From: Lepidodermella squamata
Taxonomy: Eukaryota > Animalia > Gastrotricha
Direction: 5' to 3'
Length of the DNA stretch: 64,000 nt
Assembly: GCA_047495785.1 (NCBI GenBank)
Contig: JBLDXI010000011.1
Span: forward strand, 62,001-126,000
Both the position numbers and the translations under genes were made by a program. The notes below the pieces were generated by a model. It was not told where the DNA came from and ran no database searches. It was given only the letters and a program-made list of their open reading frames with translations. Below, piece by piece: positions 8,418 through 29,867 of the stretch. Positions within the stretch are counted from its first letter, which is position 1; every line of letters starts with the position of its first letter.

Positions 8418-8454
8418 TGTCAGGACCACGCGACCCTGTAGTATCGGCGGTCGA

Positions 8455-8542
8455 GAAGTTTCCAGAAACTTCCGCGTTCTCGAACCTGCCAGAACCCAGC
8501 AAGTTCTCGAACCTTCCAGAAACTTCCGATTCTAGAACATTC
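8455..8542 (+). promoter_or_regulatory. Cluster of four heat-shock elements (inverted nGAAn arrays) in LTR U3
   Basis: GAAgtTTCcaGAAacTTC (8455-8472), TTCtcGAAccTGCcaGAA (8477-8494), TTCtcGAAccTTCcaGAAacTTC (8504-8526), TTCtaGAAcaTTC (8530-8542). Confidence 0.88.
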
Positions 8543-8550
8543 CATTGTAA

Positions 8551-8558
8551 TATATAAA
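8551..8558 (+). promoter_or_regulatory. LTR TATA box
   Basis: TATATAAA, 8 bp downstream of the last HSE and about 30 bp upstream of the predicted transcription start (about 8583). Confidence 0.8.
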
Positions 8559-8664
8559 CCCTTGTTTCGCTTATGTTATTTTAATTGTAATATTAACTGT
8601 TTCTTTGCTAATAAACGGCAATACTTAGCTTACAGCTTCTGTGTTTTGCTTCCGCTCTTACACG

Positions 8665-8675
8665 ATATTACAATT
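8665..8675 (+). other. Self-priming type primer binding site (non-tRNA)
   Basis: ATATTACAATT, 2 nt after the 5' LTR, is the exact reverse complement of AATTGTAATAT at 8583-8593 in the LTR. No TGG tRNA-type PBS is present. Confidence 0.8.
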
Positions 8676-8728
8676 CACCCGTTACTGGCTAGCTACCTAT
8701 TGCCATCCGATTCCGATTCACGTCTGCA

Positions 8729-11700
8729 ATGGAAGCTACCGAACTCCATGCCCAGTTGGCCGATCTTCAAGGCCAGAACTATGCGATTAACCAGCGACTC
8801 AACGCCTTCACCGACCAAATCGCACAACTCTGCACCGCTGTCAATGCCTTGCGAGCTGTTGCACCCTCGGTTCAACCCGTTGCTTCGGATCCCGTTGCCC
8901 AAGTCCCGGTTACTACGACTCAGCCGAATGCTTTACGGGCGAAGATACCTGGTCGGTATGCCGGCGATCGGTCTAAGTTCCGAGCCTTTGTCACGCAATG
9001 CCAGATCTACCTACGACTGAATGCAGCCTACTACCCCGATGATTCTGCAAAGGTCGCGTTCATCTGCACTCTGCTGGACGACTCTGCCCGAGATTGGATG
9101 ACGCCCTTTGCCGAGACGAACCACGCCATTATGAGCGATTTTGCGGCGTTCCTGGCAAGTTTCAAGGCGGCCTTCGACGATCCTAATCGCACACGAACAG
9201 CCGAGTTAGCGCTTCAACGGCTCAAACAAGGCAACCGCTCAGTTGCAGTTTACGCTGCCGAGTTTCAGCGCCTGGCTGTCGACACCACCTGGAACGACTC
9301 CGCGCTCGCTCACCAGTTCCGGTTCGGTCTATCCGACGAAATCAAAGATGAGCTGGCCCGTGTTGATTACCCGTCCAACCTGCAAGATCTGATCAACCTG
9401 TCGAACAAAATTGACGCCAGGCTCACAGAGCGTAGGTTGGAGAGAAAGCATCAAGCGATTTTTCCAAGGTCCACGGTGGTTCCTCCCACGATCACCGCTC
9501 CTGCCTCATTGCCGCAAGCAGCAGCACAGCCGGAGCCAGAGCCAATGCAGGTCGACGTTGTTCGCAAACCGTTGACGCAAGCGGAACGAGAATACCGACG
9601 CAAGAACGGCCTCTGCATGTACTGCGGTCAACCTGGCCATGTTATTCGTACCTGCCCGACACGACCTACCACAGCTCGTGTTAGGAAAATTAACAATATC
9701 CAACATGATGTACCTATTGCTGATGATGAAATAAATAATGAAGAATCGTACTCGCGCTCCTCTCTTTTTCTGTTGAGGTCTGTTGTCAACGTCCCAAAGG
9801 ATGACCTTGCTGTCATGGCAATAGCTATGGTCGACTGCGGCGCGGACGGCAACTTCATGGACATCCAGTTCGCCAAGGAGCACGACATCCCGCTGATCGA
9901 AAAGAAGAAACCAATCCCTGTTGGTGGAATAGATGGCCGATCGCTCAAATCTGGTCCGATAACTCATCAAACTGCTCCCTTACAGTTCGAAATCTATGGC
10001 CACATCGAGACTATTGTATTCGAGCTCATCGATAGTCCTCACTACCCAGTCATCCTCGGTATTCCCTGGTTGGAGCTTCACGACCCAACGATCCGATGGT
10101 CGGGAAGAACAATCATGTTCAACGCTGCGCATTGCAAGAAGCATTGCAACGCTGAATTCCAGCATCATTTCGTTGCGGCTGTGAGTCAAGCTACAGCTGC
10201 GCCTGTAGACCCGCTCCAAGGTCTACCTTCAAAATACCATGAGTTTGCTGATGTCTTCAGCGAAAAAGAAGCTGACAAACTACCCCCACATCGGCCATAC
10301 GATTGTCCGATCGATCTCGAACCTGGAACAATGCCACCATTCGGCCCGATCTACAGTTTATCAGAAGTTGAGCTGGAAGCATTGAAGAAATACATTTCCG
10401 AGAACCTGGAGAAAGGCTTCATCCGTTCATCAAAGTCCTCTGCGGGATCTCCCATCCTTTTCGTTAAGAAAAAAGACGGCACCCTTCGGCTATGTGTCGA
10501 CTATCGTGGCCTGAACAAAATCACAAAACGAAACCGGTATCCATTGCCTTTGATTCCGGAACTCCTGGACCGTTTGCGACATGCTAAGATCTTTACTAAA
10601 CTGGACCTCCGCGGCGCTTACAATTTACTCCGGATTAAGGAGGGCGATGAGTGGAAAACCGCGTTCCGTACCAGGTATGGCCTTTTCGAGTACCTGGTTA
10701 TGCCTTTTGGGTTGACCAATGCCCCGGCGGCGTTCCAGTACTTCATGAACGACATATTCCGCGACATGCTGGACATTTGCGTGGTTATCTACCTCGATGA
10801 TATCCTCATTTTCAGCGAAGATCCCAGCAAACACGAGGAACATGTCAGAGAAGTGCTTCGACGGCTGAGAGAAAATCGGCTATTCTCCAAACTGTCGAAG
10901 TGCGAGTTCGATGTCAAGAAGGTCGAATTTCTCGGATTTCACATTTCCACGGAAGGCATTGCCATGGACGAGAAGAAAGTGGCCTGTATCCGCGACTGGA
11001 AACGTCCAACATCCGTGAAAGACATCCAATGCTTCATGGGCTTTGCAAACTTCTATCGACGCTTCGTCGCGAATTTTGCCAAAATTGCGCACCCAATCAA
11101 TCGTCTCCTGAAGAAAAATGCACCTTTTCACTGGGATGACAGCGCCGAACAAGCTTTCAAAACCCTGAAAGAGAAGTTCACTTCAGCTCCCGTTCTGATT
11201 CATCCAGACCCCGATTTGCCGTTCATTGTCGAGACCGACTGTTCAAATTTCGCACTTGGATGCATTCTCTCTCAAGTCCACTCCGATGGCCGTTTGCACC
11301 CTTGTGCTTACTACTCGCGAAGTCTGTCCGACGCCGAGCGGAACTACGATATCCACGACAAGGAACTTTTGGCGGTCAAAGTGGCTTTCGAAGAATGGCG
11401 ACATTACCTCGAAGGTGCTCGCCACAAAATAACGGTTTACTGCGACCACAAAAACCTGGAATACTTCATGAGCCAAAGGAAGATTCTCAGTCAAAGGCAA
11501 GCTCGATGGGCGAACTTTTTCTCGCGATTCGATTTCGTTCTTACGTACCGCCCTGGTAGCAAAGGGGGAAAACCGGACGCCTTGTCCAGAAGACCCGAGT
11601 ACCGCGGAACTGACAAAAATGACGATCCCGAAGCCTCGAGCGTGCTAACCCCTGCCCATTTCCAAGTGATGGCACTCAAATCGTTTTCGTGGTCTTGCCA

Positions 11701-13315
11701 ATTTTCGGAAGACATCAAGTCAGCTTTGGCCTCCGATTCCTTTGCAAAGTCCGTTCTTGAATCCTTAAACGGCGAACACTGCGACCCGAAGTATGAACAC
11801 TTTTCCGAGCAAAACGGCTTGCTGTTGTTCAAGAACTTGATCTACGTCCCTGAAAGTCTACGGCTGAAAGTGTTACAGCTCCGTCATGACGCCAAGGTTG
11901 CAGGGCATTTCGGTTTCCGGAAAACTTTGGAGCTTGTCTCTCGCGATTATTGGTGGCCGAAGCAACGCCAGTTTGTCTACGAGTTCGTCAAGACTTGCGA
12001 TACCTGTAAGCGAGCCAAGGCGCCAAGACACCTGCCGTATGGCAATCTCGAACCGTTACCAACCCCGGATCGACCATGGTCCTCCATTTCGATGGATTTC
12101 ATCACCGAGCTTCCTCAATCAAACGGAAATACAGTGATTCTGAATGTAGTCGATCGGCTAACGAAAATGGCCCATTTCATTTCGCTTCCCAAACTACCAT
12201 CAGCAGAAGAAACAGCTTCAGTGTTTCTCAAGGACATTTTCCGATTACACGGCGTACCAGATTCGACCGTGACAGACCGCGGCTCGCAATTCGCCTCAAA
12301 ATTCTGGAAACGATTTTTTGAGCTTCTAGGAACCGATGTCAAACTCTCAACTGCAAATCACCCGGAAACAGACGGCCAGACGGAGCGTGTCAACCAGGTG
12401 CTGGAGCAATACCTTCGTTGTTTCACGAGCTACCAACAAGACGATTGGGCCGATCTGCTCCCCATCGCTGAATTCTGCTACAATAATTCGCTGCACGCTT
12501 CGACGAACTGCACTCCTTTCCTTGCCAACTATGGTTTCCAGCCCAAATTCGACCCGTTGACACCAAATTCCAGTGAAGTTCCTCGCGCCGAAGCTCGCAT
12601 CAAGGACCTTTCGGAACTGAAAAACGCCCTCATGACCGAACTGGAAGCCGCAAAAGAAACGTACAAGAAATACGCCGACCTCAAGCGGCAACCAGGTCCA
12701 ACTTTTTCCGAAGGCGACCTTGTTTGGCTATCAGCCAAGCATGTTTCGACGAACCGACCAAGCAAAAAACTTGATTTCAAGCGTCTTGGGCCGTTCAAAG
12801 TCGTCGAGAAGATCAGTGAGTTGGTTTACCGACTTCAACTGCCTCCAAGTCTGAAAATCCATCCGGTGTTTCACATCTCCATGCTAGAGCCATACGTCGA
12901 AAACACGATTCCCGGTCGAAAACAACCGCCGCCACCACCAGTCGAATCCGAAGAAGGCGACGAATTCGAAGTTGAAGCCATACTCGACTCGAAGGTGGAA
13001 CGTGGCACCTTGAAGTACCTGGTTGATTGGAAGGGTTATGACCCAGAAGAACGAAGTTGGGAGCCGGTTTCAAACCTGAACTGTCCAGACCTGTTGGCCG
13101 AGTTCCACGCCAAGTACCCTGACAAACCGAAAGGCACGAATGCGACGTCTGGAAGCCGTCGGCTACGACGGGGGATGTCAGGACCACGCGACCCTGTAGT
13201 ATCGGCGGTCGAGAAGTTTCCAGAAACTTCCGCGTTCTCGAACCTGCCAGAACCCAGCAAGTTCTCGAACCTTCCAGAAACTTCCGATTCTAGAACATTC
13301 CATTGTAATATATAA
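8729..13315 (+). CDS. Gag-Pol polyprotein, 1528 aa (capsid, CCHC zinc knuckle, aspartic protease, RT, RNase H, integrase, chromodomain)
   Basis: CMYCGQPGHVIRTC knuckle; VDCGADGNF protease; RLCVDYRGLN and YLDD RT; ETDCS..ERNY..DKELL..DHKNL RNase H; HDAKVAGH..CDTC, MDF, TDRG and ETDGQTER integrase; GPF motif; FEVEAILD..YLVDWKGY..SWEP chromodomain. Confidence 0.98.
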   Translation: MEATELHAQLADLQGQNYAINQRLNAFTDQIAQLCTAVNALRAVAPSVQPVASDPVAQVPVTTTQPNALRAKIPGRYAGDRSKFRAFVTQCQIYLRLNAAYYPDDSAKVAFICTLLDDSARDWMTPFAETNHAIMSDFAAFLASFKAAFDDPNRTRTAELALQRLKQGNRSVAVYAAEFQRLAVDTTWNDSALAHQFRFGLSDEIKDELARVDYPSNLQDLINLSNKIDARLTERRLERKHQAIFPRSTVVPPTITAPASLPQAAAQPEPEPMQVDVVRKPLTQAEREYRRKNGLCMYCGQPGHVIRTCPTRPTTARVRKINNIQHDVPIADDEINNEESYSRSSLFLLRSVVNVPKDDLAVMAIAMVDCGADGNFMDIQFAKEHDIPLIEKKKPIPVGGIDGRSLKSGPITHQTAPLQFEIYGHIETIVFELIDSPHYPVILGIPWLELHDPTIRWSGRTIMFNAAHCKKHCNAEFQHHFVAAVSQATAAPVDPLQGLPSKYHEFADVFSEKEADKLPPHRPYDCPIDLEPGTMPPFGPIYSLSEVELEALKKYISENLEKGFIRSSKSSAGSPILFVKKKDGTLRLCVDYRGLNKITKRNRYPLPLIPELLDRLRHAKIFTKLDLRGAYNLLRIKEGDEWKTAFRTRYGLFEYLVMPFGLTNAPAAFQYFMNDIFRDMLDICVVIYLDDILIFSEDPSKHEEHVREVLRRLRENRLFSKLSKCEFDVKKVEFLGFHISTEGIAMDEKKVACIRDWKRPTSVKDIQCFMGFANFYRRFVANFAKIAHPINRLLKKNAPFHWDDSAEQAFKTLKEKFTSAPVLIHPDPDLPFIVETDCSNFALGCILSQVHSDGRLHPCAYYSRSLSDAERNYDIHDKELLAVKVAFEEWRHYLEGARHKITVYCDHKNLEYFMSQRKILSQRQARWANFFSRFDFVLTYRPGSKGGKPDALSRRPEYRGTDKNDDPEASSVLTPAHFQVMALKSFSWSCQFSEDIKSALASDSFAKSVLESLNGEHCDPKYEHFSEQNGLLLFKNLIYVPESLRLKVLQLRHDAKVAGHFGFRKTLELVSRDYWWPKQRQFVYEFVKTCDTCKRAKAPRHLPYGNLEPLPTPDRPWSSISMDFITELPQSNGNTVILNVVDRLTKMAHFISLPKLPSAEETASVFLKDIFRLHGVPDSTVTDRGSQFASKFWKRFFELLGTDVKLSTANHPETDGQTERVNQVLEQYLRCFTSYQQDDWADLLPIAEFCYNNSLHASTNCTPFLANYGFQPKFDPLTPNSSEVPRAEARIKDLSELKNALMTELEAAKETYKKYADLKRQPGPTFSEGDLVWLSAKHVSTNRPSKKLDFKRLGPFKVVEKISELVYRLQLPPSLKIHPVFHISMLEPYVENTIPGRKQPPPPPVESEEGDEFEVEAILDSKVERGTLKYLVDWKGYDPEERSWEPVSNLNCPDLLAEFHAKYPDKPKGTNATSGSRRLRRGMSGPRDPVVSAVEKFPETSAFSNLPEPSKFSNLPETSDSRTFHCNI
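13165..13175 (+). other. Polypurine tract (short, imperfect)
   Basis: ACGACGGGGGA immediately 5' of the 3' LTR. Confidence 0.65.
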
Positions 13316-13420
13316 ACCCTTGTTTCGCTTATGTTATTTTAATTGTAATATTAACTGTTTCTTTGCTAATAAACGGCAATACTTAGCTTACAGCTTCTGT
13401 GTTTTGCTTCCGCTCTTACA
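13176..13420 (+). repeat. 3' LTR (245 bp), with HSE cluster 13213-13300, TATA 13309-13316 and AATAAA 13368-13373
   Basis: Direct repeat of the 5' LTR at offset 4758, followed by TSD CAGCC and in-register resumption of the satellite. Confidence 0.97.
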
Positions 13421-16400
13421 CAGCCAAAACGGCTGAAATCGCAGTTTTGGACCCTTGTACGTAGCGCCACGATGCAGAATCGTGCGCCACCGCGGTAAAT
13501 CAGCCATATTCTGGCATCATTCGATAGTGGCAGCATGCGCAAACACGTTTGCAGGCGATTGGCGCACATTTCGGATGACCGATATTTCGCTGCCAGCCAA
13601 AACGGCTGAAATCGCAGTTTTGGACCCTTGTACGTAGCGCCACGATGCAGAATCGTGCGCCACCGCGGTAAATCAGCCATATTCTGGCATCATTCGATAG
13701 TGGCAGCATGCGCAAACACGTTTGCAGGCGATTGGCGCACATTTCGGATGACCGATATTTCGCTGCCAGCCAAAACGGCTGAAATCGCAGTTTTGGACCC
13801 TTGTACGTAGCGCCTCGATGCAGAATCGTGCGCCACCGCGGTAAATCAGCCATATTCTGGCATCATTCGATAGTGGCAGCATGCGCAAACACGTTTGCAG
13901 GCGATTGGCGCACATTTCGGATGACCGATATTTCGCTGCCAGCCAAAACGGCTGAAATCGCAGTTTTGGACCCTTGTACGTAGCGCCTCGATGCAGAATC
14001 GTGCGCCACCGCGGTAAATCAGCCATATTCTGGCATCATTCGATAGTGGCAGCATGCGCAAACACGTTTGCAGGCGATTGGCGCACATTTCGGATGACCG
14101 ATATTTCGCTGCCAGCCAAAACGGCTGAAATCGCAGTTTTGGACCCTTGTACGTAGCGCCACGATGCAGAATCGTGCGCCACCGCGGTAAATCAGCCATA
14201 TTCTGGCATCATTCGATAGTGGCAGCATGCGCAAACACGTTTGCAGGCGATTGGCGCACATTTCGGATGACCGATATTTCGCTGCCAGCCAAAACGGCTG
14301 AAATCGCAGTTTTGGACCCTTGTACGTAGCGCCTCGATGCAGAATCGTGCGCCACCGCGGTAAATCAGCCATATTCTGGCATCATTCGATAGTGGCAGCA
14401 TGCGCAAACACGTTTGCAGGCGATTGGCGCACATTTCGGATGACCGATATTTCGCTGCCAGCCAAAACGGCTGAAATCGCAGTTTTGGACCCTTGTACGT
14501 AGCGCCACGATGCAGAATCGTGCGCCACCGCGGTAAATCAGCCATATTCTGGCATCATTCGATAGTGGCAGCATGCGCAAACACGTTTGCAGGCGATTGG
14601 CGCACATTTCGGATGACCGATATTTCGCTGCCAGCCAAAACGGCTGAAATCGCAGTTTTGGACCCTTGTACGTAGCGCCACGATGCAGAATCGTGCGCCA
14701 CCGCGGTAAATCAGCCATATTCTGGCATCATTCGATAGTGGCAGCATGCGCAAACACGTTTGCAGGCGATTGGCGCACATTTCGGATGACCGATATTTCG
14801 CTGCCAGCCAAAACGGCTGAAATCGCAGTTTTGGACCCTTGTACGTAGCGCCACGATGCAGAATCGTGCGCCACCGCGATAAATCAGCCATATTCTGGCA
14901 TCATTCGATAGTGGCAGCATGCGCAAACACGTTTGCAGGCGATTGGCGCACATTTCGGATGACCGATATTTCGCTGCCAGCCAAAACGGCTGAAATCGCA
15001 GTTTTGGACCCTTGTACGTAGCGCCACGATGCAGAATCGTGCGCCACCGCGGTAAATCAGCCATATTCTGGCATCATTCGATAGTGGCAGCATGCGCAAA
15101 CACGTTTGCAGGCGATTGGCGCACATTTCGGATGACCGATATTTCGCTGCCAGCCAAAACGGCTGAAATCGCAGTTTTGGACCCTTGTACGTAGCGCCAC
15201 GATGCAGAATCGTGCGCCACCGCGATAAATCAGCCATATTCTGGCATCATTCGATAGTGGCAGCATGCGCAAACACGTTTGCAGGCGATTGGCGCACATT
15301 TCGGATGACCGATATTTCGCTGCCAGCCAAAACGGCTGAAATCGCAGTTTTGGACCCTTGTACGTAGCGCCACGATGCAGAATCGTGCGCCACCGCGGTA
15401 AATCAGCCATATTCTGGCATCATTCGATAGTGGCAGCATGCGCAAACACGTTTGCAGGCGATTGGCGCACATTTCGGATGACCGATATTTCGCTGCCAGC
15501 CAAAACGGCTGAAATCGCAGTTTTGGACCCTTGTACGTAGCGCCACGATGCAGAATCGTGCGCCACCGCGGTAAATCAGCCATATTCTGGCATCATTCGA
15601 TAGTGGCAGCATGCGCAAACACGTTTGCAGGCGATTGGCGCACATTTCGGATGACCGATATTTCGCTGCCAGCCAAAACGGCTGAAATCGCAGTTTTGGA
15701 CCCTTGTACGTAGCGCCACGATGCAGAATCGTGCGCCACCGCGGTAAATCAGCCATATTCTGGCATCATTCGATAGTGGCAGCATGCGCAAACACGTTTG
15801 CAGGCGATTGGCGCACATTTCGGATGACCGATATTTCGCTGCCAGCCAAAACGGCTGAAATCGCAGTTTTGGACCCTTGTACGTAGCGCCACGATGCAGA
15901 ATCGTGCGCCACCGCGGTAAATCAGCCATATTCTGGCATCATTCGATAGTGGCAGCATGCGCAAACACGTTTGCAGGCGATTGGCGCACATTTCGGATGA
16001 CCGATATTTCGCTGCCAGCCAAAACGGCTGAAATCGCAGTTTTGGACCCTTGTACGTAGCGCCACGATGCAGAATCGTGCGCCACCGCGGTAAATCAGCC
16101 ATATTCTGGCATCATTCGATAGTGGCAGCATGCGCAAACACGTTTGCAGGCGATTGGCGCACATTTCGGATGACCGATATTTCGCTGCCAGCCAACACGG
16201 CTGAAATCGCAGTTTTGGACCCTTGTACGTAGCGCCACGATGCAGAATCGTGCGCCACCGCGGTAAATCAGCCATATTCTGGCATCATTCGATAGTGGCA
16301 GCATGCGCAAACACGTTTGCAGGCGATTGGCGCACATTTCGGATGACCGATATTTCGCTGCCAGCCAAAACGGCTGAAATCGCAGTTTTGGACCCTTGTA

Positions 16401-19400
16401 CGTAGCGCCACGATGCAGAATCGTGCGCCACCGCGGTAAATCAGCCATATTCTGGCATCATTCGATAGTGGCAGCATGCGCAAACACGTTTGCAGGCGAT
16501 TGGCGCACATTTCGGATGACCGATATTTCGCTGCCAGCCAAAACGGCTGAAATCGCAGTTTTGGACCCTTGTACGTAGCGCCACGATGCAGAATCGTGCG
16601 CCACCGCGGTAAATCAGCCATATTCTGGCATCATTCGATAGTGGCAGCATGCGCAAACACGTTTGCAGGCGATTGGCGCACATTTCGGATGACCGATATT
16701 TCGCTGCCAGCCAACACGGCTGAAATCGCAGTTTTGGACCCTTGTACGTAGCGCCACGATGCAGAATCGTGCGCCACCGCGGTAAATCAGCCATATTCTG
16801 GCATCATTCGATAGTGGCAGCATGCGCAAACACGTTTGCAGGCGATTGGCGCACATTTCGGATGACCGATATTTCGCTGCCAGCCAAAACGGCTGAAATC
16901 GCAGTTTTGGACCCTTGTACGTAGCGCCACGATGCAGAATCGTGCGCCACCGCGATAAATCAGCCATATTCTGGCATCATTCGATAGTGGCAGCATGCGC
17001 AAACACGTTTGCAGGCGATTGGCGCACATTTCGGATGACCGATATTTCGCTGCCAGCCAAAACGGCTGAAATCGCAGTTTTGGACCCTTGTACGTAGCGC
17101 CACGATGCAGAATCGTGCGCCACCGCGATAAATCAGCCATATTCTGGCATCATTCGATAGTGGCAGCATGCGCAAACACGTTTGCAGGCGATTGGCGCAC
17201 ATTTCGGATGACCGATATTTCGCTGCCAGCCAAAACGGCTGAAATCGCAGTTTTGGACCCTTGTACGTAGCGCCACGATGCAGAATCGTGCGCCACCGCG
17301 GTAAATCAGCCATATTCTGGCATCATTCGATAGTGGCAGCATGCGCAAACACGTTTGCAGGCGATTGGCGCACATTTCGGATGACCGATATTTCGCTGCC
17401 AGCCAAAACGGCTGAAATCGCAGTTTTGGACCCTTGTACGTAGCGCCACGATGCAGAATCGTGCGCCACCGCGGTAAATCAGCCATATTCTGGCATCATT
17501 CGATAGTGGCAGCATGCGCAAACACGTTTGCAGGCGATTGGCGCACATTTCGGATGACCGATATTTCGCTGCCAGCCAAAACGGCTGAAATCGCAGTTTT
17601 GGACCCTTGTACGTAGCGCCACGATGCAGAATCGTGCGCCACCGCGGTAAATCAGCCATATTCTGGCATCATTCGATAGTGGCAGCATGCGCAAACACGT
17701 TTGCAGGCGATTGGCGCACATTTCGGATGACCGATATTTCGCTGCCAGCCAACACGGCTGAAATCGCAGTTTTGGACCCTTGTACGTAGCGCCACGATGC
17801 AGAATCGTGCGCCACCGCGGTAAATCAGCCATATTCTGGCATCATTCGATAGTGGCAGCATGCGCAAACACGTTTGCAGGCGATTGGCGCACATTTCGGA
17901 TGACCGATATTTCGCTGCCAGCCAAAACGGCTGAAATCGCAGTTTTGGACCCTTGTACGTAGCGCCACGATGCAGAATCGTGCGCCACCGCGGTAAATCA
18001 GCCATATTCTGGCATCATTCGATAGTGGCAGCATGCGCAAACACGTTTGCAGGCGATTGGCGCACATTTCGGATGACCGATATTTCGCTGCCAGCCAAAA
18101 CGGCTGAAATCGCAGTTTTGGACCCTTGTACGTAGCGCCACGATGCAGAATCGTGCGCCACCGCGGTAAATCAGCCATATTCTGGCATCATTCGATAGTG
18201 GCAGCATGCGCAAACACGTTTGCAGGCGATTGGCGCACATTTCGGATGACCGATATTTCGCTGCCAGCCAAAACGGCTGAAATCGCAGTTTTGGACCCTT
18301 GTACGTAGCGCCACGATGCAGAATCGTGCGCCACCGCGGTAAATCAGCCATATTCTGGCATCATTCGATAGTGGCAGCATGCGCAAACACGTTTGCAGGC
18401 GATTGGCGCACATTTCGGATGACCGATATTTCGCTGCCAGCCAAAACGGCTGAAATCGCAGTTTTGGACCCTTGTACGTAGCGCCACGATGCAGAATCGT
18501 GCGCCACCGCGATAAATCAGCCATATTCTGGCATCATTCGATAGTGGCAGCATGCGCAAACACGTTTGCAGGCGATTGGCGCACATTTCGGATGACCGAT
18601 ATTTCGCTGCCAGCCAAAACGGCTGAAATCGCAGTTTTGGACCCTTGTACGTAGCGCCACGATGCAGAATCGTGCGCCACCGCGATAAATCAGCCATATT
18701 CTGGCATCATTCGATAGTGGCAGCATGCGCAAACACGTTTGCAGGCGATTGGCGCACATTTCGGATGACCGATATTTCGCTGCCAGCCAAAACGGCTGAA
18801 ATCGCAGTTTTGGACCCTTGTACGTAGCGCCACGATGCAGAATCGTGCGCCACCGCGGTAAATCAGCCATATTCTGGCATCATTCGATAGTGGCAGCATG
18901 CGCAAACACGTTTGCAGGCGATTGGCGCACATTTCGGATGACCGATATTTCGCTGCCAGCCAAAACGGCTGAAATCGCAGTTTTGGACCCTTGTACGTAG
19001 CGCCACGATGCAGAATCGTGCGCCACCGCGGTAAATCAGCCATATTCTGGCATCATTCGATAGTGGCAGCATGCGCAAACACGTTTGCAGGCGATTGGCG
19101 CACATTTCGGATGACCGATATTTCGCTGCCAGCCAAAACGGCTGAAATCGCAGTTTTGGACCCTTGTACGTAGCGCCACGATGCAGAATCGTGCGCCACC
19201 GCGGTAAATCAGCCATATTCTGGCATCATTCGATAGTGGCAGCATGCGCAAACACGTTTGCAGGCGATTGGCGCACATTTCGGATGACCGATATTTCGCT
19301 GCCAGCCAAAACGGCTGAAATCGCAGTTTTGGACCCTTGTACGTAGCGCCACGATGCAGAATCGTGCGCCACCGCGGTAAATCAGCCATATTCTGGCATC

Positions 19401-22400
19401 ATTCGATAGTGGCAGCATGCGCAAACACGTTTGCAGGCGATTGGCGCACATTTCGGATGACCGATATTTCGCTGCCAGCCAAAACGGCTGAAATCGCAGT
19501 TTTGGACCCTTGTACGTAGCGCCACGATGCAGAATCGTGCGCCACCGCGATAAATCAGCCATATTCTGGCATCATTCGATAGTGGCAGCATGCGCAAACA
19601 CGTTTGCAGGCGATTGGCGCACATTTCGGATGACCGATATTTCGCTGCCAGCCAAAACGGCTGAAATCGCAGTTTTGGACCCTTGTACGTAGCGCCACGA
19701 TGCAGAATCGTGCGCCACCGCGATAAATCAGCCATATTCTGGCATCATTCGATAGTGGCAGCATGCGCAAACACGTTTGCAGGCGATTGGCGCACATTTC
19801 GGATGACCGATATTTCGCTGCCAGCCAAAACGGCTGAAATCGCAGTTTTGGACCCTTGTACGTAGCGCCACGATGCAGAATCGTGCGCCACCGCGGTAAA
19901 TCAGCCATATTCTGGCATCATTCGATAGTGGCAGCATGCGCAAACACGTTTGCAGGCGATTGGCGCACATTTCGGATGACCGATATTTCGCTGCCAGCCA
20001 AAACGGCTGAAATCGCAGTTTTGGACCCTTGTACGTAGCGCCACGATGCAGAATCGTGCGCCACCGCGGTAAATCAGCCATATTCTGGCATCATTCGATA
20101 GTGGCAGCATGCGCAAACACGTTTGCAGGCGATTGGCGCACATTTCGGATGACCGATATTTCGCTGCCAGCCAAAACGGCTGAAATCGCAGTTTTGGACC
20201 CTTGTACGTAGCGCCACGATGCAGAATCGTGCGCCACCGCGGTAAATCAGCCATATTCTGGCATCATTCGATAGTGGCAGCATGCGCAAACACGTTTGCA
20301 GGCGATTGGCGCACATTTCGGATGACCGATATTTCGCTGCCAGCCAAAACGGCTGAAATCGCAGTTTTGGACCCTTGTACGTAGCGCCACGATGCAGAAT
20401 CGTGCGCCACCGCGGTAAATCAGCCATATTCTGGCATCATTCGATAGTGGCAGCATGCGCAAACACGTTTGCAGGCGATTGGCGCACATTTCGGATGACC
20501 GATATTTCGCTGCCAGCCAAAACGGCTGAAATCGCAGTTTTGGACCCTTGTACGTAGCGCCACGATGCAGAATCGTGCGCCACCGCGATAAATCAGCCAT
20601 ATTCTGGCATCATTCGATAGTGGCAGCATGCGCAAACACGTTTGCAGGCGATTGGCGCACATTTCGGATGACCGATATTTCGCTGCCAGCCAAAACGGCT
20701 GAAATCGCAGTTTTGGACCCTTGTACGTAGCGCCACGATGCAGAATCGTGCGCCACCGCGGTAAATCAGCCATATTCTGGCATCATTCGATAGTGGCAGC
20801 ATGCGCAAACACGTTTGCAGGCGATTGGCGCACATTTCGGATGACCGATATTTCGCTGCCAGCCAAAACGGCTGAAATCGCAGTTTTGGACCCTTGTACG
20901 TAGCGCCACGATGCAGAATCGTGCGCCACCGCGATAAATCAGCCATATTCTGGCATCATTCGATAGTGGCAGCATGCGCAAACACGTTTGCAGGCGATTG
21001 GCGCACATTTCGGATGACCGATATTTCGCTGCCAGCCAAAACGGCTGAAATCGCAGTTTTGGACCCTTGTACGTAGCGCCACGATGCAGAATCGTGCGCC
21101 ACCGCGATAAATCAGCCATATTCTGGCATCATTCGATAGTGGCAGCATGCGCAAACACGTTTGCAGGCGATTGGCGCACATTTCGGATGACCGATATTTC
21201 GCTGCCAGCCAAAACGGCTGAAATCGCAGTTTTGGACCCTTGTACGTAGCGCCACGATGCAGAATCGTGCGCCACCGCGATAAATCAGCCATATTCTGGC
21301 ATCATTCGATAGTGGCAGCATGCGCAAACACGTTTGCAGGCGATTGGCGCACATTTCGGATGACCGATATTTCGCTGCCAGCCAAAACGGCTGAAATCGC
21401 AGTTTTGGACCCTTGTACGTAGCGCCACGATGCAGAATCGTGCGCCACCGCGGTAAATCAGCCATATTCTGGCATCATTCGATAGTGGCAGCATGCGCAA
21501 ACACGTTTGCAGGCGATTGGCGCACATTTCGGATGACGGATATTTCGCTGCCAGCCAAAACGGCTGAAATCGCAGTTTTGGACCCTTGTACGTAGCGCCA
21601 CGATGCAGAATCGTGCGCCACCGCGGTAAATCAGCCATATTCTGGCATCATTCGATAGTGGCAGCATGCGCAAACACGTTTGCAGGCGATTGGCGCACAT
21701 TTCGGATGACCGATATTTCGCTGCCAGCCAAAACGGCTGAAATCGCAGTTTTGGACCCTTGTACGTAGCGCCACGATGCAGAATCGTGCGCCACCGCGGT
21801 AAATCAGCCATATTCTGGCATCATTCGATAGTGGCAGCATGCGCAAACACGTTTGCAGGCGATTGGCGCACATTTCGGATGACCGATATTTCGCTGCCAG
21901 CCAAAACGGCTGAAATCGCAGTTTTGGACCCTTGTACGTAGCGCCACGATGCAGAATCGTGCGCCACCGCGATAAATCAGCCATATTCTGGCATCATTCG
22001 ATAGTGGCAGCATGCGCAAACACGTTTGCAGGCGATTGGCGCACATTTCGGATGACCGATATTTCGCTGCCAGCCAAAACGGCTGAAATCGCAGTTTTGG
22101 ACCCTTGTACGTAGCGCCACGATGCAGAATCGTGCGCCACCGCGATAAATCAGCCATATTCTGGCATCATTCGATAGTGGCAGCATGCGCAAACACGTTT
22201 GCAGGCGATTGGCGCACATTTCGGATGACCGATATTTCGCTGCCAGCCAAAACGGCTGAAATCGCAGTTTTGGACCCTTGTACGTAGCGCCACGATGCAG
22301 AATCGTGCGCCACCGCGATAAATCAGCCATATTCTGGCATCATTCGATAGTGGCAGCATGCGCAAACACGTTTGCAGGCGATTGGCGCACATTTCGGATG

Positions 22401-25400
22401 ACCGATATTTCGCTGCCAGCCAAAACGGCTGAAATCGCAGTTTTGGACCCTTGTACGTAGCGCCACGATGCAGAATCGTGCGCCACCGCGGTAAATCAGC
22501 CATATTCTGGCATCATTCGATAGTGGCAGCATGCGCAAACACGTTTGCAGGCGATTGGCGCACATTTCGGATGACGGATATTTCGCTGCCAGCCAAAACG
22601 GCTGAAATCGCAGTTTTGGACCCTTGTACGTAGCGCCACGATGCAGAATCGTGCGCCACCGCGGTAAATCAGCCATATTCTGGCATCATTCGATAGTGGC
22701 AGCATGCGCAAACACGTTTGCAGGCGATTGGCGCACATTTCGGATGACCGATATTTCGCTGCCAGCCAAAACGGCTGAAATCGCAGTTTTGGACCCTTGT
22801 ACGTAGCGCCACGATGCAGAATCGTGCGCCACCGCGGTAAATCAGCCATATTCTGGCATCATTCGATAGTGGCAGCATGCGCAAACACGTTTGCAGGCGA
22901 TTGGCGCACATTTCGGATGACCGATATTTCGCTGCCAGCCAAAACGGCTGAAATCGCAGTTTTGGACCCTTGTACGTAGCGCCACGATGCAGAATCGTGC
23001 GCCACCGCGATAAATCAGCCATATTCTGGCATCATTCGATAGTGGCAGCATGCGCAAACACGTTTGCAGGCGATTGGCGCACATTTCGGATGACCGATAT
23101 TTCGCTGCCAGCCAAAACGGCTGAAATCGCAGTTTTGGACCCTTGTACGTAGCGCCACGATGCAGAATCGTGCGCCACCGCGATAAATCAGCCATATTCT
23201 GGCATCATTCGATAGTGGCAGCATGCGCAAACACGTTTGCAGGCGATTGGCGCACATTTCGGATGACGGATATTTCGCTGCCAGCCAAAACGGCTGAAAT
23301 CGCAGTTTTGGACCCTTGTACGTAGCGCCACGATGCAGAATCGTGCGCCACCGCGGTAAATCAGCCATATTCTGGCATCATTCGATAGTGGCAGCATGCG
23401 CAAACACGTTTGCAGGCGATTGGCGCACATTTCGGATGACCGATATTTCGCTGCCAGCCAAAACGGCTGAAATCGCAGTTTTGGACCCTTGTACGTAGCG
23501 CCACGATGCAGAATCGTGCGCCACCGCGGTAAATCAGCCATATTCTGGCATCATTCGATAGTGGCAGCATGCGCAAACACGTTTGCAGGCGATTGGCGCA
23601 CATTTCGGATGACCGATATTTCGCTGCCAGCCAAAACGGCTGAAATCGCAGTTTTGGACCCTTGTACGTAGCGCCACGATGCAGAATCGTGCGCCACCGC
23701 GATAAATCAGCCATATTCTGGCATCATTCGATAGTGGCAGCATGCGCAAACACGTTTGCAGGCGATTGGCGCACATTTCGGATGACCGATATTTCGCTGC
23801 CAGCCAAAACGGCTGAAATCGCAGTTTTGGACCCTTGTACGTAGCGCCACGATGCAGAATCGTGCGCCACCGCGATAAATCAGCCATATTCTGGCATCAT
23901 TCGATAGTGGCAGCATGCGCAAACACGTTTGCAGGCGATTGGCGCACATTTCGGATGACCGATATTTCGCTGCCAGCCAAAACGGCTGAAATCGCAGTTT
24001 TGGACCCTTGTACGTAGCGCCACGATGCAGAATCGTGCGCCACCGCGATAAATCAGCCATATTCTGGCATCATTCGATAGTGGCAGCATGCGCAAACACG
24101 TTTGCAGGCGATTGGCGCACATTTCGGATGACCGATATTTCGCTGCCAGCCAAAACGGCTGAAATCGCAGTTTTGGACCCTTGTACGTAGCGCCACGATG
24201 CAGAATCGTGCGCCACCGCGGTAAATCAGCCATATTCTGGCATCATTCGATAGTGGCAGCATGCGCAAACACGTTTGCAGGCGATTGGCGCACATTTCGG
24301 ATGACCGATATTTCGCTGCCAGCCAAAACGGCTGAAATCGCAGTTTTGGACCCTTGTACGTAGCGCCACGATGCAGAATCGTGCGCCACCGCGGTAAATC
24401 AGCCATATTCTGGCATCATTCGATAGTGGCAGCATGCGCAAACACGTTTGCAGGCGATTGGCGCACATTTCGGATGACCGATATTTCGCTGCCAGCCAAA
24501 ACGGCTGAAATCGCAGTTTTGGACCCTTGTACGTAGCGCCACGATGCAGAATCGTGCGCCACCGCGGTAAATCAGCCATATTCTGGCATCATTCGATAGT
24601 GGCAGCATGCGCAAACACGTTTGCAGGCGATTGGCGCACATTTCGGATGACCGATATTTCGCTGCCAGCCAAAACGGCTGAAATCGCAGTTTTGGACCCT
24701 TGTACGTAGCGCCACGATGCAGAATCGTGCGCCACCGCGATAAATCAGCCATATTCTGGCATCATTCGATAGTGGCAGCATGCGCAAACACGTTTGCAGG
24801 CGATTGGCGCACATTTCGGATGACCGATATTTCGCTGCCAGCCAAAACGGCTGAAATCGCAGTTTTGGACCCTTGTACGTAGCGCCACGATGCAGAATCG
24901 TGCGCCACCGCGATAAATCAGCCATATTCTGGCATCATTCGATAGTGGCAGCATGCGCAAACACGTTTGCAGGCGATTGGCGCACATTTCGGATGACCGA
25001 TATTTCGCTGCCAGCCAAAACGGCTGAAATCGCAGTTTTGGACCCTTGTACGTAGCGCCACGATGCAGAATCGTGCGCCACCGCGATAAATCAGCCATAT
25101 TCTGGCATCATTCGATAGTGGCAGCATGCGCAAACACGTTTGCAGGCGATTGGCGCACATTTCGGATGACCGATATTTCGCTGCCAGCCAAAACGGCTGA
25201 AATCGCAGTTTTGGACCCTTGTACGTAGCGCCACGATGCAGAATCGTGCGCCACCGCGGTAAATCAGCCATATTCTGGCATCATTCGATAGTGGCAGCAT
25301 GCGCAAACACGTTTGCAGGCGATTGGCGCACATTTCGGATGACCGATATTTCGCTGCCAGCCAAAACGGCTGAAATCGCAGTTTTGGACCCTTGTACGTA

Positions 25401-28400
25401 GCGCCACGATGCAGAATCGTGCGCCACCGCGGTAAATCAGCCATATTCTGGCATCATTCGATAGTGGCAGCATGCGCAAACACGTTTGCAGGCGATTGGC
25501 GCACATTTCGGATGACCGATATTTCGCTGCCAGCCAAAACGGCTGAAATCGCAGTTTTGGACCCTTGTACGTAGCGCCACGATGCAGAATCGTGCGCCAC
25601 CGCGGTAAATCAGCCATATTCTGGCATCATTCGATAGTGGCAGCATGCGCAAACACGTTTGCAGGCGATTGGCGCACATTTCGGATGACCGATATTTCGC
25701 TGCCAGCCAAAACGGCTGAAATCGCAGTTTTGGACCCTTGTACGTAGCGCCACGATGCAGAATCGTGCGCCACCGCGGTAAATCAGCCATATTCTGGCAT
25801 CATTCGATAGTGGCAGCATGCGCAAACACGTTTGCAGGCGATTGGCGCACATTTCGGATGACCGATATTTCGCTGCCAGCCAAAACGGCTGAAATCGCAG
25901 TTTTGGACCCTTGTACGTAGCGCCACGATGCAGAATCGTGCGCCACCGCGGTAAATCAGCCATATTCTGGCATCATTCGATAGTGGCAGCATGCGCAAAC
26001 ACGTTTGCAGGCGATTGGCGCACATTTCGGATGACCGATATTTCGCTGCCAGCCAAAACGGCTGAAATCGCAGTTTTGGACCCTTGTACGTAGCGCCACG
26101 ATGCAGAATCGTGCGCCACCGCGGTAAATCAGCCATATTCTGGCATCATTCGATAGTGGCAGCATGCGCAAACACGTTTGCAGGCGATTGGCGCACATTT
26201 CGGATGACCGATATTTCGCTGCCAGCCAACACGGCTGAAATCGCAGTTTTGGACCCTTGTACGTAGCGCCACGATGCAGAATCGTGCGCCACCGCGGTAA
26301 ATCAGCCATATTCTGGCATCATTCGATAGTGGCAGCATGCGCAAACACGTTTGCAGGCGATTGGCGCACATTTCGGATGACCGATATTTCGCTGCCAGCC
26401 AACACGGCTGAAATCGCAGTTTTGGACCCTTGTACGTAGCGCCACGATGCAGAATCGTGCGCCACCGCGGTAAATCAGCCATATTCTGGCATCATTCGAT
26501 AGTGGCAGCATGCGCAAACACGTTTGCAGGCGATTGGCGCACATTTCGGATGACCGATATTTCGCTGCCAGCCAAAACGGCTGAAATCGCAGTTTTGGAC
26601 CCTTGTACGTAGCGCCACGATGCAGAATCGTGCGCCACCGCGGTAAATCAGCCATATTCTGGCATCATTCGATAGTGGCAGCATGCGCAAACACGTTTGC
26701 AGGCGATTGGCGCACATTTCGGATGACCGATATTTCGCTGCCAGCCAACACGGCTGAAATCGCAGTTTTGGACCCTTGTACGTAGCGCCACGATGCAGAA
26801 TCGTGCGCCACCGCGGTAAATCAGCCATATTCTGGCATCATTCGATAGTGGCAGCATGCGCAAACACGTTTGCAGGCGATTGGCGCACATTTCGGATGAC
26901 CGATATTTCGCTGCCAGCCAACACGGCTGAAATCGCAGTTTTGGACCCTTGTACGTAGCGCCACGATGCAGAATCGTGCGCCACCGCGGTAAATCAGCCA
27001 TATTCTGGCATCATTCGATAGTGGCAGCATGCGCAAACACGTTTGCAGGCAATTGGCGCACATTTCGGATGACCGATATTTCGCTGCCAGCCAAAACGGC
27101 TGAAATCGCAGTTTTGGACCCTTGTACGTAGCGCCACGATGCAGAATCGTGCGCCACCGCGATAAATCAGCCATATTCTGGCATCATTCGATAGTGGCAG
27201 CATGCGCAAACACGTTTGCAGGCGATTGGCGCACATTTCGGATGACCGATATTTCGCTGCCAGCCAAAACGGCTGAAATCGCAGTTTTGGACCCTTGTAC
27301 GTAGCGCCACGATGCAGAATCGTGCGCCACCGCGGTAAATCAGCCATATTCTGGCATCATTCGATAGTGGCAGCATGCGCAAACACGTTTGCAGGCGATT
27401 GGCGCACATTTCGGATGACCGATATTTCGCTGCCAGCCAAAACGGCTGAAATCGCAGTTTTGGACCCTTGTACGTAGCGCCACGATGCAGAATCGTGCGC
27501 CACCGCGGTAAATCAGCCATATTCTGGCATCATTCGATAGTGGCAGCATGCGCAAACACGTTTGCAGGCGATTGGCGCACATTTCGGATGACCGATATTT
27601 CGCTGCCAGCCAAAACGGCTGAAATCGCAGTTTTGGACCCTTGTACGTAGCGCCACGATGCAGAATCGTGCGCCACCGCGGTAAATCAGCCATATTCTGG
27701 CATCATTCGATAGTGGCAGCATGCGCAAACACGTTTGCAGGCGATTGGCGCACATTTCGGATGACCGATATTTCGCTGCCAGCCAAAACGGCTGAAATCG
27801 CAGTTTTGGACCCTTGTACGTAGCGCCACGATGCAGAATCGTGCGCCACCGCGGTAAATCAGCCATATTCTGGCATCATTCGATAGTGGCAGCATGCGCA
27901 AACACATTTGCAGGCGATTGGCGCACATTTCGGATGACCGATATTTCGCTGCCAGCCAAAACGGCTGAAATCGCAGTTTTGGACCCTTGTACGTAGCGCC
28001 ACGATGCAGAATCGTGCGCCACCGCGGTAAATCAGCCATATTCTGGCATCATTCGATAGTGGCAGCATGCGCAAACACGTTTGCAGGCGATTGGCGCACA
28101 TTTCGGATGACCGATATTTCGCTGCCAGCCAAAACGGCTGAAATCGCAGTTTTGGACCCTTGTACGTAGCGCCACGATGCAGAATCGTGCGCCACCGCGG
28201 TAAATCAGCCATATTCTGGCATCATTCGATAGTGGCAGCATGCGCAAACACGTTTGCAGGCGATTGACGCACATTTCGGATGACCGATATTTCGCTGCCA
28301 GCCAAAACGGCTGAAATCGCAGTTTTGGACCCTTGTACGTAGCGCCACGATGCAGAATCGTGCGCCACCGCGGTAAATCAGCCATATTCTGGCATCATTC

Positions 28401-29267
28401 GATAGTGGCAGCATGCGCAAACACGTTTGCAGGCGATTGGCGCACATTTCGGATGACCGATATTTCGCTGCCAGCCAAAACGGCTGAAATCGCAGTTTTG
28501 GACCCTTGTACGTAGCGCCACGATGCAGAATCGTGCGCCACCGCGGTAAATCAGCCATATTCTGGCATCATTCGATAGTGGCAGCATGCGCAAACACGTT
28601 TGCAGGCGATTGGCGCACATTTCGGATGACCGATATTTCGCTGCCAGCCAAAACGGCTGAAATCGCAGTTTTGGACCCTTGTACGTAGCGCCACGCTGCA
28701 GAATCGTGCGCCACCGCGGTAAATCAGCCATATTCTGGCATCATTCGATAGTGGCAGCATGCGCAAACACGTTTGCAGGCGATTGGCGCACATTTCGGAT
28801 GACCGATATTTCGCTGCCAGCCAAAACGGCTGAAATCGCAGTTTTGGACCCTTGTACGTAGCGCCACGATGCAGAATCGTGCGCCACCGCGGTAAATCAG
28901 CCATATTCTGGCATCATTCGATAGTGGCAGCATGCGCAAACACGTTTGCAGGCGATTGGCGCACATTTCGGATGACCGATATTTCGCTGCCAGCCAACAC
29001 GGCTGAAATCGCAGTTTTGGACCCTTGTACGTAGCGCCACGATGCAGAATCGTGCGCCACCGCGGTAAATCAGCCATATTCTGGCATCATTCGATAGTGG
29101 CAGCATGCGCAAACACGTTTGCAGGCAATTGGCGCACATTTCGGATGACCGATATTTCGCTGCCAGCCAAAACGGCTGAAATCGCAGTTTTGGACCCTTG
29201 TACGTAGCGCCACGATGCAGAATCGTGCGCCACCGCGGTAAATCAGCCATATTCTGGCATCATTCGA
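13421..29267. repeat. 173-bp tandem satellite array, right block (about 91.6 monomers)
   Basis: Exact 173-bp period with no indels and only a handful of recurring SNPs. Ends mid-monomer at ...GGCATCATTCGA (29267). Confidence 0.99.
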
Positions 29268-29867
29268 AGCTTTATTTTTCTGATGACGCTGGCAAATGGA
29301 AAAGCAAAACCACCCAGGGAAAGACACGCACTACTTTGATCGTATCGAGCGCCGCGTCGTATGAGCATCGCGCAGTTGCCAATCTCTTTATCAATTTTTT
29401 CGTCTCTACCCCGAGTTGGCAATAATTAAACATGTGTGGCTGTGATAACAAACTTTACAGCAGGCAGATTTTTTGGCTTCTTCAACTGTCAATCAGTCAA
29501 GACTCGAGTCTTTCTCTTCAAGTCAACTGATACAAACAAGCAAAAGTAGTTCATATATAAAGTCACAGTCTGAGGTTTGATAAAACAACATGTCCACCAT
29601 GCACTCCAGGAATGCTGATCGCCCAAGCCCATGGGCGATCGATTTTCGCAAAACACATCCATTAATGCGTACTTAACTCGACTTCCAATTGGATGCATGA
29701 ATCTCGCCCACTTAGCTTGATTGAGAGCATCGTTGCAATTGTGTTTCTGTGCGCTGCTTTTCTTCACTCAAAACATCGCGTGGTTTGTTTTGCGCTCCGT
29801 TGCGCAAATACTCGTAGCGCAATTGCTCTGCTCATGTATTCTCCCAATCCAATCTTGAACTGAAACC

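Follow-up and report, generated by a model that had tools for sequence, protein, structure and literature searches.

An HSE-bearing, self-priming chromovirus inserted in a 173-bp satellite array of the gastrotrich Lepidodermella squamata

A 5,003-bp LTR retrotransposon (8418–13420) is embedded in a 173-bp satellite in the 64,000-nucleotide stretch of Lepidodermella squamata contig C11 analyzed here (referred to as the window). We consider it probable that an intact, self-priming chromovirus of the Tf1/sushi type with a heat-shock U3 inserted here very recently, and that any read-out into the satellite is incidental, with no evolved lncRNA system behind it. An initial annotation had instead regarded the heat-shock promoter in the 3′ LTR, which points into the satellite, as part of a possible stress-induced satellite lncRNA system.

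Structure of the element and the surrounding satellite

The element and the flanking satellite comprise the following features (window coordinates).

1–8417, + strand: 173-bp satellite, upstream part; 48.6 units (TRF), extending to contig position 1
8413–8417, no strand: left copy of the target-site duplication CAGCC (5 bp), flanking the 5′ LTR
8418–8662, + strand: 5′ LTR, 245 bp, TG...CA; 100% identical to 13176–13420
8729–13315, + strand: gag-pol ORF, single and open, 1,528 aa, with Pfam domains
12965–13111, + strand: HP1-like chromodomain, residues 1413–1461 (Pfam and alignment to CBX5/CBX1/HP1 structures)
13176–13420, + strand: 3′ LTR, 245 bp, TG...CA; no difference from the 5′ LTR
13421–13425, no strand: right copy of the target-site duplication CAGCC (5 bp), flanking the 3′ LTR
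13421–29267, + strand: 173-bp satellite downstream of the 3′ LTR; 91.6 units, 99% matches (TRF)

The element is a Ty3/gypsy chromovirus: TG...CA LTRs, a short target duplication and a C-terminal integrase chromodomain are all present. According to Pfam, the ORF codes for gag, a zinc knuckle, RT, RNase H, integrase, a Tf2-type SH3 domain and the chromodomain, in this order. Its final ~46 codons extend into the 3′ LTR, where the stop codon lies inside the TATA box. Pfam gave no match to a protease in gag-pol, although residues 366–453 are conserved in alignment. The element is intact and probably active. The chromodomain aligns with the CBX5/CBX1/HP1 structures (E 1e-19) and has aromatic residues (F/W/Y) at all three aromatic-cage positions, which makes it plausible that the element is drawn to H3K9-methylated chromatin.

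Repeat comparison of the window revealed that the monomer phase of the satellite is kept across the insertion. The array occupies C11:1–91267, at least 91 kb, with the element deep inside; ordinary gene-like sequence first appears ~600 bp beyond the end of its downstream part. As assembled, the array flips its orientation at C11:41287. A 30-mer pattern count puts the satellite at ~0.12% of the assembly, including ~60 kb elsewhere in the genome. We also considered the monomer as a ribozyme or structured RNA, a reading that was rejected because an Rfam search of 7900–14300 gave no match and the fold of the would-be LTR–satellite RNA was unremarkable (z = −1.6).

A probable heat-shock promoter in the LTR

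Each LTR contains a cluster of HSEs, positioned as follows.

8455–8542, no strand: HSE cluster of the 5′ LTR (U3), with three-unit HSE matches
13213–13300, no strand: HSE cluster of the 3′ LTR, made up of phased runs with 4, 2, 5 and 3 GAA/TTC units (14 in all)
13309–13316, + strand: TATATAAA box of the 3′ LTR; the last HSE run ends 8 nt upstream

The cluster and the TATA box of the 3′ LTR had been reported in the initial annotation; both were confirmed and match those of the 5′ LTR. Canonical HSEs, each with at least three alternating nGAAn units, are thus located in U3, ahead of both the TATA box and the start site. The three-unit HSE (GAAnnTTCnnGAA) occurs 14 times in the window against 0.74 expected, a number reached by none of 100 shuffles, and 12 of these matches fall in the two LTRs (six overlapping ones in each). 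No three-unit HSE was found anywhere in the window's satellite sequence, the sole HSEs within the array being those of the inserted LTRs; HSF sites in or along the satellite, as in a SATIII-type system, are therefore absent from that sequence.

Comparison with the host genome argues for a functional promoter. Five-unit HSEs are rare, numbering 29 genome-wide versus 2 for a control pattern. The strongest non-transposon sites lie 130–200 bp upstream of three intronless host hsp70 genes, whose promoters and the LTR share one HSE-to-TATA layout, and another strong site adjoins an ORF with a DnaJ domain. The exact hsp70 sequence is absent from the protein collection searched; a word search gave matches of 73–83% scattered across molluscs, arthropods, tardigrades and vertebrates, in keeping with an animal host. 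The host also encodes an HSF DNA-binding domain gene (on C13). A solo LTR with 89% identity differs at 1 of 42 HSE core nucleotides versus 9 of 46 spacer nucleotides, and this bias toward the spacers suggests that the cores have been under selection. A sister family on C46 (75% identical) has its own HSE modules ahead of a TATATAAA box. The LTR cluster very likely acts as a genuine heat-shock promoter. An ancestral origin of the HSEs within the clade was also considered and rejected: no HSE cluster lies beside the coding region at any of 80 related metagenomic loci, although some contigs there may be too short to include complete LTRs, and the LTRs of four more distant families within this genome are likewise free of HSEs.

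Given that phased nGAAn arrays precede the TATA box at a short distance, host heat-shock factor should turn on transcription of the element under heat stress. The promoter would serve the element's own replication, as in ONSEN and the Macrostomum elements described below. Heat induction, HSF binding and any read-out are predictions from the DNA sequence; HSEs are not sufficient for a response, since two HSE-bearing families of Macrostomum showed none to heat (PMC12801592).

Start site, self-priming and polyadenylation site

The predicted start of transcription was located by means of the following features.

8583–8593, + strand: predicted 5′ end of the element RNA and self-primer, AATTGTAATAT; 32 nt past the TATA box (8551), exact complement of 8665–8675
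8665–8675, + strand: self-priming primer-binding site, ATATTACAATT; 2 nt beyond the 5′ LTR
13341, + strand: predicted transcription start of the 3′ LTR (start of R), equivalent of 8583
13368–13373, + strand: AATAAA of the 3′ LTR, 27 nt past the start; CA at 13391–13392, GT-rich stretch at 13397–13406

The putative RNA 5′ end is complementary to the primer-binding site over 11 nt, which would replace the tRNA primer site as in Tf1/sushi self-priming. This complementarity covaries in related families, in which the sequences differ and the pairing is kept: it measures 12 nt in the sister family and, among four more distant copies, 9 nt in the one on C20 and 13 nt in each of those on C16, C32 and C54. 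The covariation independently supports the start at 13341, and the start near this position that the initial annotation had proposed is backed accordingly.

That annotation had also cautioned that an AATAAA about 30 nt after the start could terminate satellite transcripts. The hexamer is present, and the usual arrangement of hexamer, CA and GU-rich stretch indicates that cleavage likely occurs at the CA, giving an R of ~50 nt. Further downstream, no AATAAA occurs on the + strand between 13374 and 31718. The ~92 AATAAA-free monomers said to face the 3′ LTR were therefore recovered (91.6 monomers, ~16 kb), but because a single repeated 173-bp unit lacks the hexamer, they count as one observation, which is expected by chance. 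Among 13 other poly(A) hexamers checked in the satellite, GATAAA alone was found, in 24 monomers.

Distribution of the family in the genome

A census listing every LTR copy of the family across the 121-Mb genome yielded seven LTR matches, which represent five independent insertions: two are full elements and three are solo LTRs, two of the latter being older. The second full copy, on C3, also has an open ORF and is 16 substitutions and one 3-bp indel apart from the first. Only the copy at 8418–13420 lies inside satellite (1/5); the other four insertions are in unique or gene-like DNA, and the sister family and all checked fragments lie outside satellite. The census found no family LTR in the remaining ~60 kb of satellite. 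We also looked for a second satellite array with a related retrotransposon fragment at its border, an idea that was rejected, as none of 11 further related loci had satellite. The concentration of copies in arrays that characterizes a satellite-targeted (centromeric-type) retrotransposon was thus not observed.

These data bear on the possibility of an evolved stress–satellite coupling, in which the chromodomain would direct the element to heterochromatic arrays and the heat-shock promoter would drive long, functional + strand satellite lncRNAs, acting for example in siRNA production, in stress bodies or in the repair of heterochromatin. With the satellite at ~0.12% of the assembly, one hit among five insertions has a chance of ~0.6%, nominally unlikely, and therefore some targeting of the element to satellite chromatin may exist, for which the HP1-like chromodomain with its aromatic cage would be suited. 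The enrichment is nevertheless post hoc, and it is confounded by the escape of satellite insertions from purifying selection. The chromodomain-guided insertion proposed in the initial annotation accordingly retains a plausible attraction to heterochromatin, but not a family-wide pattern of landing in satellite. The coupling would further fit a 3′ LTR promoter that faces 16 kb of satellite without AATAAA, read-out from LTRs into satellites in Arabidopsis (PMC1317654) and HSF1-driven satellite RNA in human cells (PMC9032817). However, the satellite copy is single, the monomer has no HSE, and a well-formed poly(A) site follows 27–50 nt past the start. Moreover, the 100% identity of the LTRs indicates a very young insertion, too recent for co-option. 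We therefore regard an evolved coupling as very improbable; a heat-shock-type promoter facing AATAAA-free satellite is supported, whereas the "system" built on it is not.

Equally far-fetched, in our estimation, is a heat-shock response in which landing in H3K9-methylated arrays, guided by the chromodomain, and an hsp70-grade LTR promoter would together yield long + strand satellite RNA that matters to the host. If true, the host might benefit, e.g., from a small-RNA supply or from heterochromatin maintenance at the array, and the locus would amount to a small-invertebrate counterpart of human SATIII induction, delivered by a transposon.

Possible transcription into the satellite

Under the explanation that we favor, a recent insertion with incidental read-out, satellite RNA could arise by two routes. 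The 3′ LTR could in principle also start transcripts at 13341, because both LTRs are identical; alternatively, transcripts from the 5′ LTR could run past the 3′ poly(A) site into the satellite. Either route could bring + strand satellite RNA under heat control at one locus, where it would be a by-product of one young insertion and not the output of an evolved satellite-lncRNA system. What speaks against this explanation is that silent heterochromatin, if the array consists of it, may keep this copy switched off.

The copy might also be a mere bystander that gives rise to no satellite RNA, with or without heat, owing to repressed chromatin, to occlusion of the 3′ LTR by transcription from the 5′ LTR, or to cleavage at the LTR poly(A) site after ~50 nt. 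Promoter occlusion of the 3′ LTR is established retrovirus biology, AATAAA, CA and the GT-rich stretch come directly past the start, and the element is buried in satellite, with the array spanning at least 91 kb. However, 5′-LTR transcripts must bypass the same poly(A) site to yield full-length RNA, and the two LTRs do not differ anywhere between the start and the U5 end. Termination is also generally weakened by heat stress. In human cells, HSF is able to reach satellite heterochromatin (PMC9032817). A silent bystander is unlikely, though it deserves more weight than an evolved coupling.

Comparison with known elements

HSE-bearing, heat-type LTR retrotransposons are already known, as is LTR read-out into satellites, and the present element adds to the former. 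The HSE-containing Ty3/Mdg4 LTR retrotransposons of Macrostomum lignano, which belong to the Mag, CsRN1 and Gmr1/Osvaldo families, are likewise animal Ty3/gypsy elements with canonical nGAAnnTTCnnGAAn motifs ahead of the TATA box and start in the LTR (PMC12801592). Heat induction in this flatworm was HSE-dependent and reached >250-fold; copy numbers are low, and the HSE motifs were gained independently (PMC12801592). The element described here belongs to another clade (chromodomain, self-priming, single-ORF Tf1/sushi type) in another host, and its cluster is denser, with six overlapping three-unit motifs per LTR versus one to four in Macrostomum, where heat induction is proven and not, as here, read from sequence. 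ONSEN (ATCOPIA78) of Arabidopsis, whose LTR HSEs similarly ride the host heat-shock response, is proven to be heat-inducible (PMC3907296); unlike our element, it is a plant Ty1/copia element, tRNA-primed and without a chromodomain.

With regard to the satellite, the Arabidopsis elements Athila2 and 106B are also lodged among satellite repeats, and their LTR-started transcripts enter the cen180 satellite on one strand (PMC1317654). In Arabidopsis, however, the insertions are many and randomly oriented, versus one here, and the transcripts follow the loss of silencing (met1, hda6, ddm1) and not heat, whereas our case is built on DNA sequence. Human Satellite III is transcribed in an HSF-dependent manner into lncRNA of HSF1 nuclear stress bodies (PMC9032817); there the SATIII repeats contain the putative HSEs, in large pericentromeric blocks, in contrast to the one inserted LTR pair here. 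In structure, the element resembles Tf1 of fission yeast and the sushi group of chromoviruses, with which it shares a single gag-pol ORF, the Tf2-type SH3 domain and chromodomain at the integrase C-terminus, and the self-priming complementarity; from this group it is set apart by nearest protein relatives that are just 38–56% identical and by the HSE cluster.

With this element, the host heat-shock promoter design has been copied by an LTR retrotransposon in one further, independent instance. We found no report in the literature of an HSE-LTR element in self-priming chromoviruses or in this host; further examples had been anticipated by the authors who described the Macrostomum elements (PMC12801592). 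The satellite setting adds little, and would at most provide a natural single-locus reporter of LTR firing inside an array. Because the element is intact, occurs in two nearly identical copies and has a start that can be predicted precisely, it would make an easy test case for heat-driven transposition in this host.

Structure of the element and the satellite array

The window spans G000:C11:62001-126000. The retrotransposon studied here is a chromovirus inserted in a satellite, and its features are as follows (window coordinates; HSE, heat-shock element).

1-8417 and 13421-29267: 173-bp satellite, unit identity 98-99%
8418-13420: LTR retrotransposon, 5,003 bp, interrupting the satellite
8418-8662 and 13176-13420: LTRs, 245 bp each, 100% identical to each other
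8729-13315: single ORF of 1,528 aa, with gag, zinc knuckle, reverse transcriptase, RNase H, integrase, Tf2-type SH3 and chromodomain
13213-13300: HSE cluster of the 3' LTR; 14 GAA/TTC units per LTR, in phased runs of 4, 2, 5 and 3
13309-13316: TATA box TATATAAA; the final HSE run stops 8 nt upstream
13368: AATAAA, +27 from the predicted start

Each LTR has TG at its 5' end and CA at its 3' end, the 5-bp target duplication CAGCC is present on both sides, and the satellite phase is exactly unbroken across the insertion. The chromodomain aligns best with HP1/CBX5/CBX1 structures (E 1e-19), and its cage is aromatic at three of three positions (F, W and Y versus Y, W and F in CBX5). The gag-pol ORF extends ~46 codons into the 3' LTR (13176-13315), passing through the HSE cluster and stopping within the TATA box; thus, the U3 promoter is also the coding sequence for the tail following the chromodomain.

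A satellite 30-mer occurs 845 times in the assembly, which corresponds to ~146 kb (0.12%). The array on contig C11 accounts for ~86 kb of satellite and runs from the first base of the contig to C11:91267, window positions 1-29267 being its right end (G000:C11:1-91267), while the remaining ~60 kb elsewhere in the assembly carries no LTR of the window-copy family. This array is arranged head-to-head, with ~41 kb in minus and ~50 kb in plus orientation meeting at a spacerless junction at C11:41287 (5286/5287 of the fetched locus L110); it represents a genuine giant palindrome or else a fold-back artefact of the assembly.

The LTR as a probable heat-shock promoter

The HSE cluster and TATA box that the initial annotation placed in the 3' LTR are both present. 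The window contains 14 three-unit HSE matches, compared with an expectation of 0.74; none of the shuffles reached this count, and 12 of the matches fall within the two LTRs. Genome-wide, the five-unit pattern has 29 occurrences (~20 sites) versus 2 for the reversed control. Among the strongest sites outside transposons, three precede intronless hsp70 genes by 130-200 bp and one more adjoins an ORF with a DnaJ domain. The three hsp70 genes are near-identical and of the inducible type (L017, C2:1.538 Mb; L018, C2:1.628 Mb; L019, C12:1.311 Mb), carry promoters with HSE arrays of 5 to 8 units and a TATA box, and would be useful positive controls for heat-shock work in this animal. The LTR shares its design with these promoters, in which an extended HSE array lies distally and a shorter module ends ~10-15 nt before the TATA box. 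A gene for the DNA-binding domain of heat-shock factor was found on C13. Between the window LTR and a solo LTR of 89% identity on C42, the HSE region differs by 1 substitution in 42 core nt and 9 in 46 spacer nt (P ~0.015, our own binomial estimate). These four lines, rarity and host usage, shared layout, host factor and conservation, argue that the cluster is meaningful in the host, and the LTR very probably does contain a heat-shock promoter.

The sister element on C46 is 75% identical overall, its LTR being mostly unalignable in U3, and has its own GAA/TTC modules before TATATAAA, in part as ~15-bp tandem repeats. Its two LTRs (L013 2305-2512 vs 7019-7242) differ by one extra ~15-bp HSE-containing repeat, CTCTGGAACCTTCCATG-like, so that the module number is changing by tandem duplication. 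HSEs were found neither in the LTRs of more distant families of the same genome nor in 80 related metagenomic elements (38-53% protein identity); this promoter type was therefore gained within this small lineage.

Predicted transcription start and possible read-out into the satellite

Positions 8583-8593 (11 nt) are exactly complementary to 8665-8675, 2 nt beyond the LTR, an arrangement that corresponds at sequence level to the self-priming of Tf1/sushi elements. The complementarity places the predicted start at 8583 and 13341, and the earlier proposal of a start near 13341 is borne out at the level of prediction. The sister family has a 12-nt pairing of other sequence, 31 nt past its TATA box, and four more distant copies have still other pairings of 9 nt (C20) and 13 nt (C16, C32 and C54). 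Base pairing of the RNA 5' end with the PBS covaries in three chromovirus lineages of the genome, AATTGTAATAT, AGTTTGTATTAT and ATTCTGGTTATTT (the window pair; L013 2432-2443 with post-LTR sequence; L103-L106), which supports tRNA-independent priming.

Downstream of the AATAAA, a CA at 13391 is followed by a GT-rich stretch (13397-13406), a layout from which we infer an R region of ~50 nt and a poly(A) site 27-50 nt past the predicted start. The element can make its genomic RNA only if this site is bypassed in the 5' LTR, and the two LTRs do not differ between the predicted start and the end of U5; bypass at the 3' LTR site is therefore also plausible, unless it requires leader sequences lying past the 5' LTR. 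As initially noted, the downstream monomers lack AATAAA; the + strand is free of it from 13374 to 31718, and GATAAA is the sole hexamer present out of 13 others examined. This absence is a weak argument for read-out, because it is a property of one 173-bp unit. The GATAAA-creating variant is present on the + strand in 24 of the 92 monomers of 13421-29267, marking a sub-family of units within the array.

Nothing in the sequence forbids read-out from the 3' LTR into the satellite. Transcripts started in the 5' LTR that do not terminate in the 3' LTR would provide a second route to satellite RNA, and heat stress favours termination failure. The would-be LTR-satellite RNA showed no Rfam match and no unusual fold.

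Genomic copies and the relation to satellite

Seven LTR matches in the 121-Mb assembly represent five independent insertions.

C11: window copy, full-length, two LTRs
C3: second full-length copy, two LTRs, target duplication GAGCG, open ORF; 16 substitutions and one 3-bp indel separate it from the window copy
C31: solo LTR, target duplication AAGGC
C42: two older solo or truncated LTRs, 89-91% identical

The stress-induced satellite lncRNA system suggested as possible in the initial annotation is not supported: satellite flanks only the window copy, the other four insertions lying in unique or gene-like DNA; the satellite unit contains no HSE; and the identical LTR pair indicates an insertion too recent for co-option. 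No satellite was found beside the sister element or eleven further related loci in the fetched regions. One insertion of five within 0.12% of the genome has a nominal chance of ~0.6%, a post hoc figure with n=1 that is confounded because selection does not remove satellite insertions; considered alongside the HP1-like chromodomain, it makes some attraction to heterochromatin conceivable.

Like ONSEN of Arabidopsis (PMC3907296) and four Ty3/Mdg4 families of the flatworm Macrostomum lignano, established since 2025 as heat-activated, with induction abolished by HSE mutation (PMC12801592), the window copy is an element with HSE-bearing LTRs, but it belongs to a different clade and its heat induction is predicted from sequence. 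The authors of the Macrostomum study anticipated further cases (PMC12801592). Its position resembles that of Athila2 in Arabidopsis, where LTR-started transcripts continue into cen180 satellite repeats (PMC1317654), whereas it lacks every defining feature of human HSF1-driven satellite RNA, in which putative HSEs lie inside the repeats (PMC9032817).

Two solo or truncated LTRs have unusual neighbors. The C31 solo LTR (5001-5245 of L009, G000:C31:923492-933491) is located exactly between two long ORFs on the same strand, of 683 and 932 codons, and apparently interrupts a single very long ORF, whose only family match is a weak one to Lipase_3. An old 5'-truncated C42 LTR (L011, G000:C42:2454689-2464688) lies between giant minus-strand ORFs (871-3309 and 6020-9922) with bacterial-type SecA domains (SecA_DEAD, SecA_PP_bind, SecA P-loop and Helicase_C); this SecA-like gene, unusual for an animal genome, may be a transferred gene.
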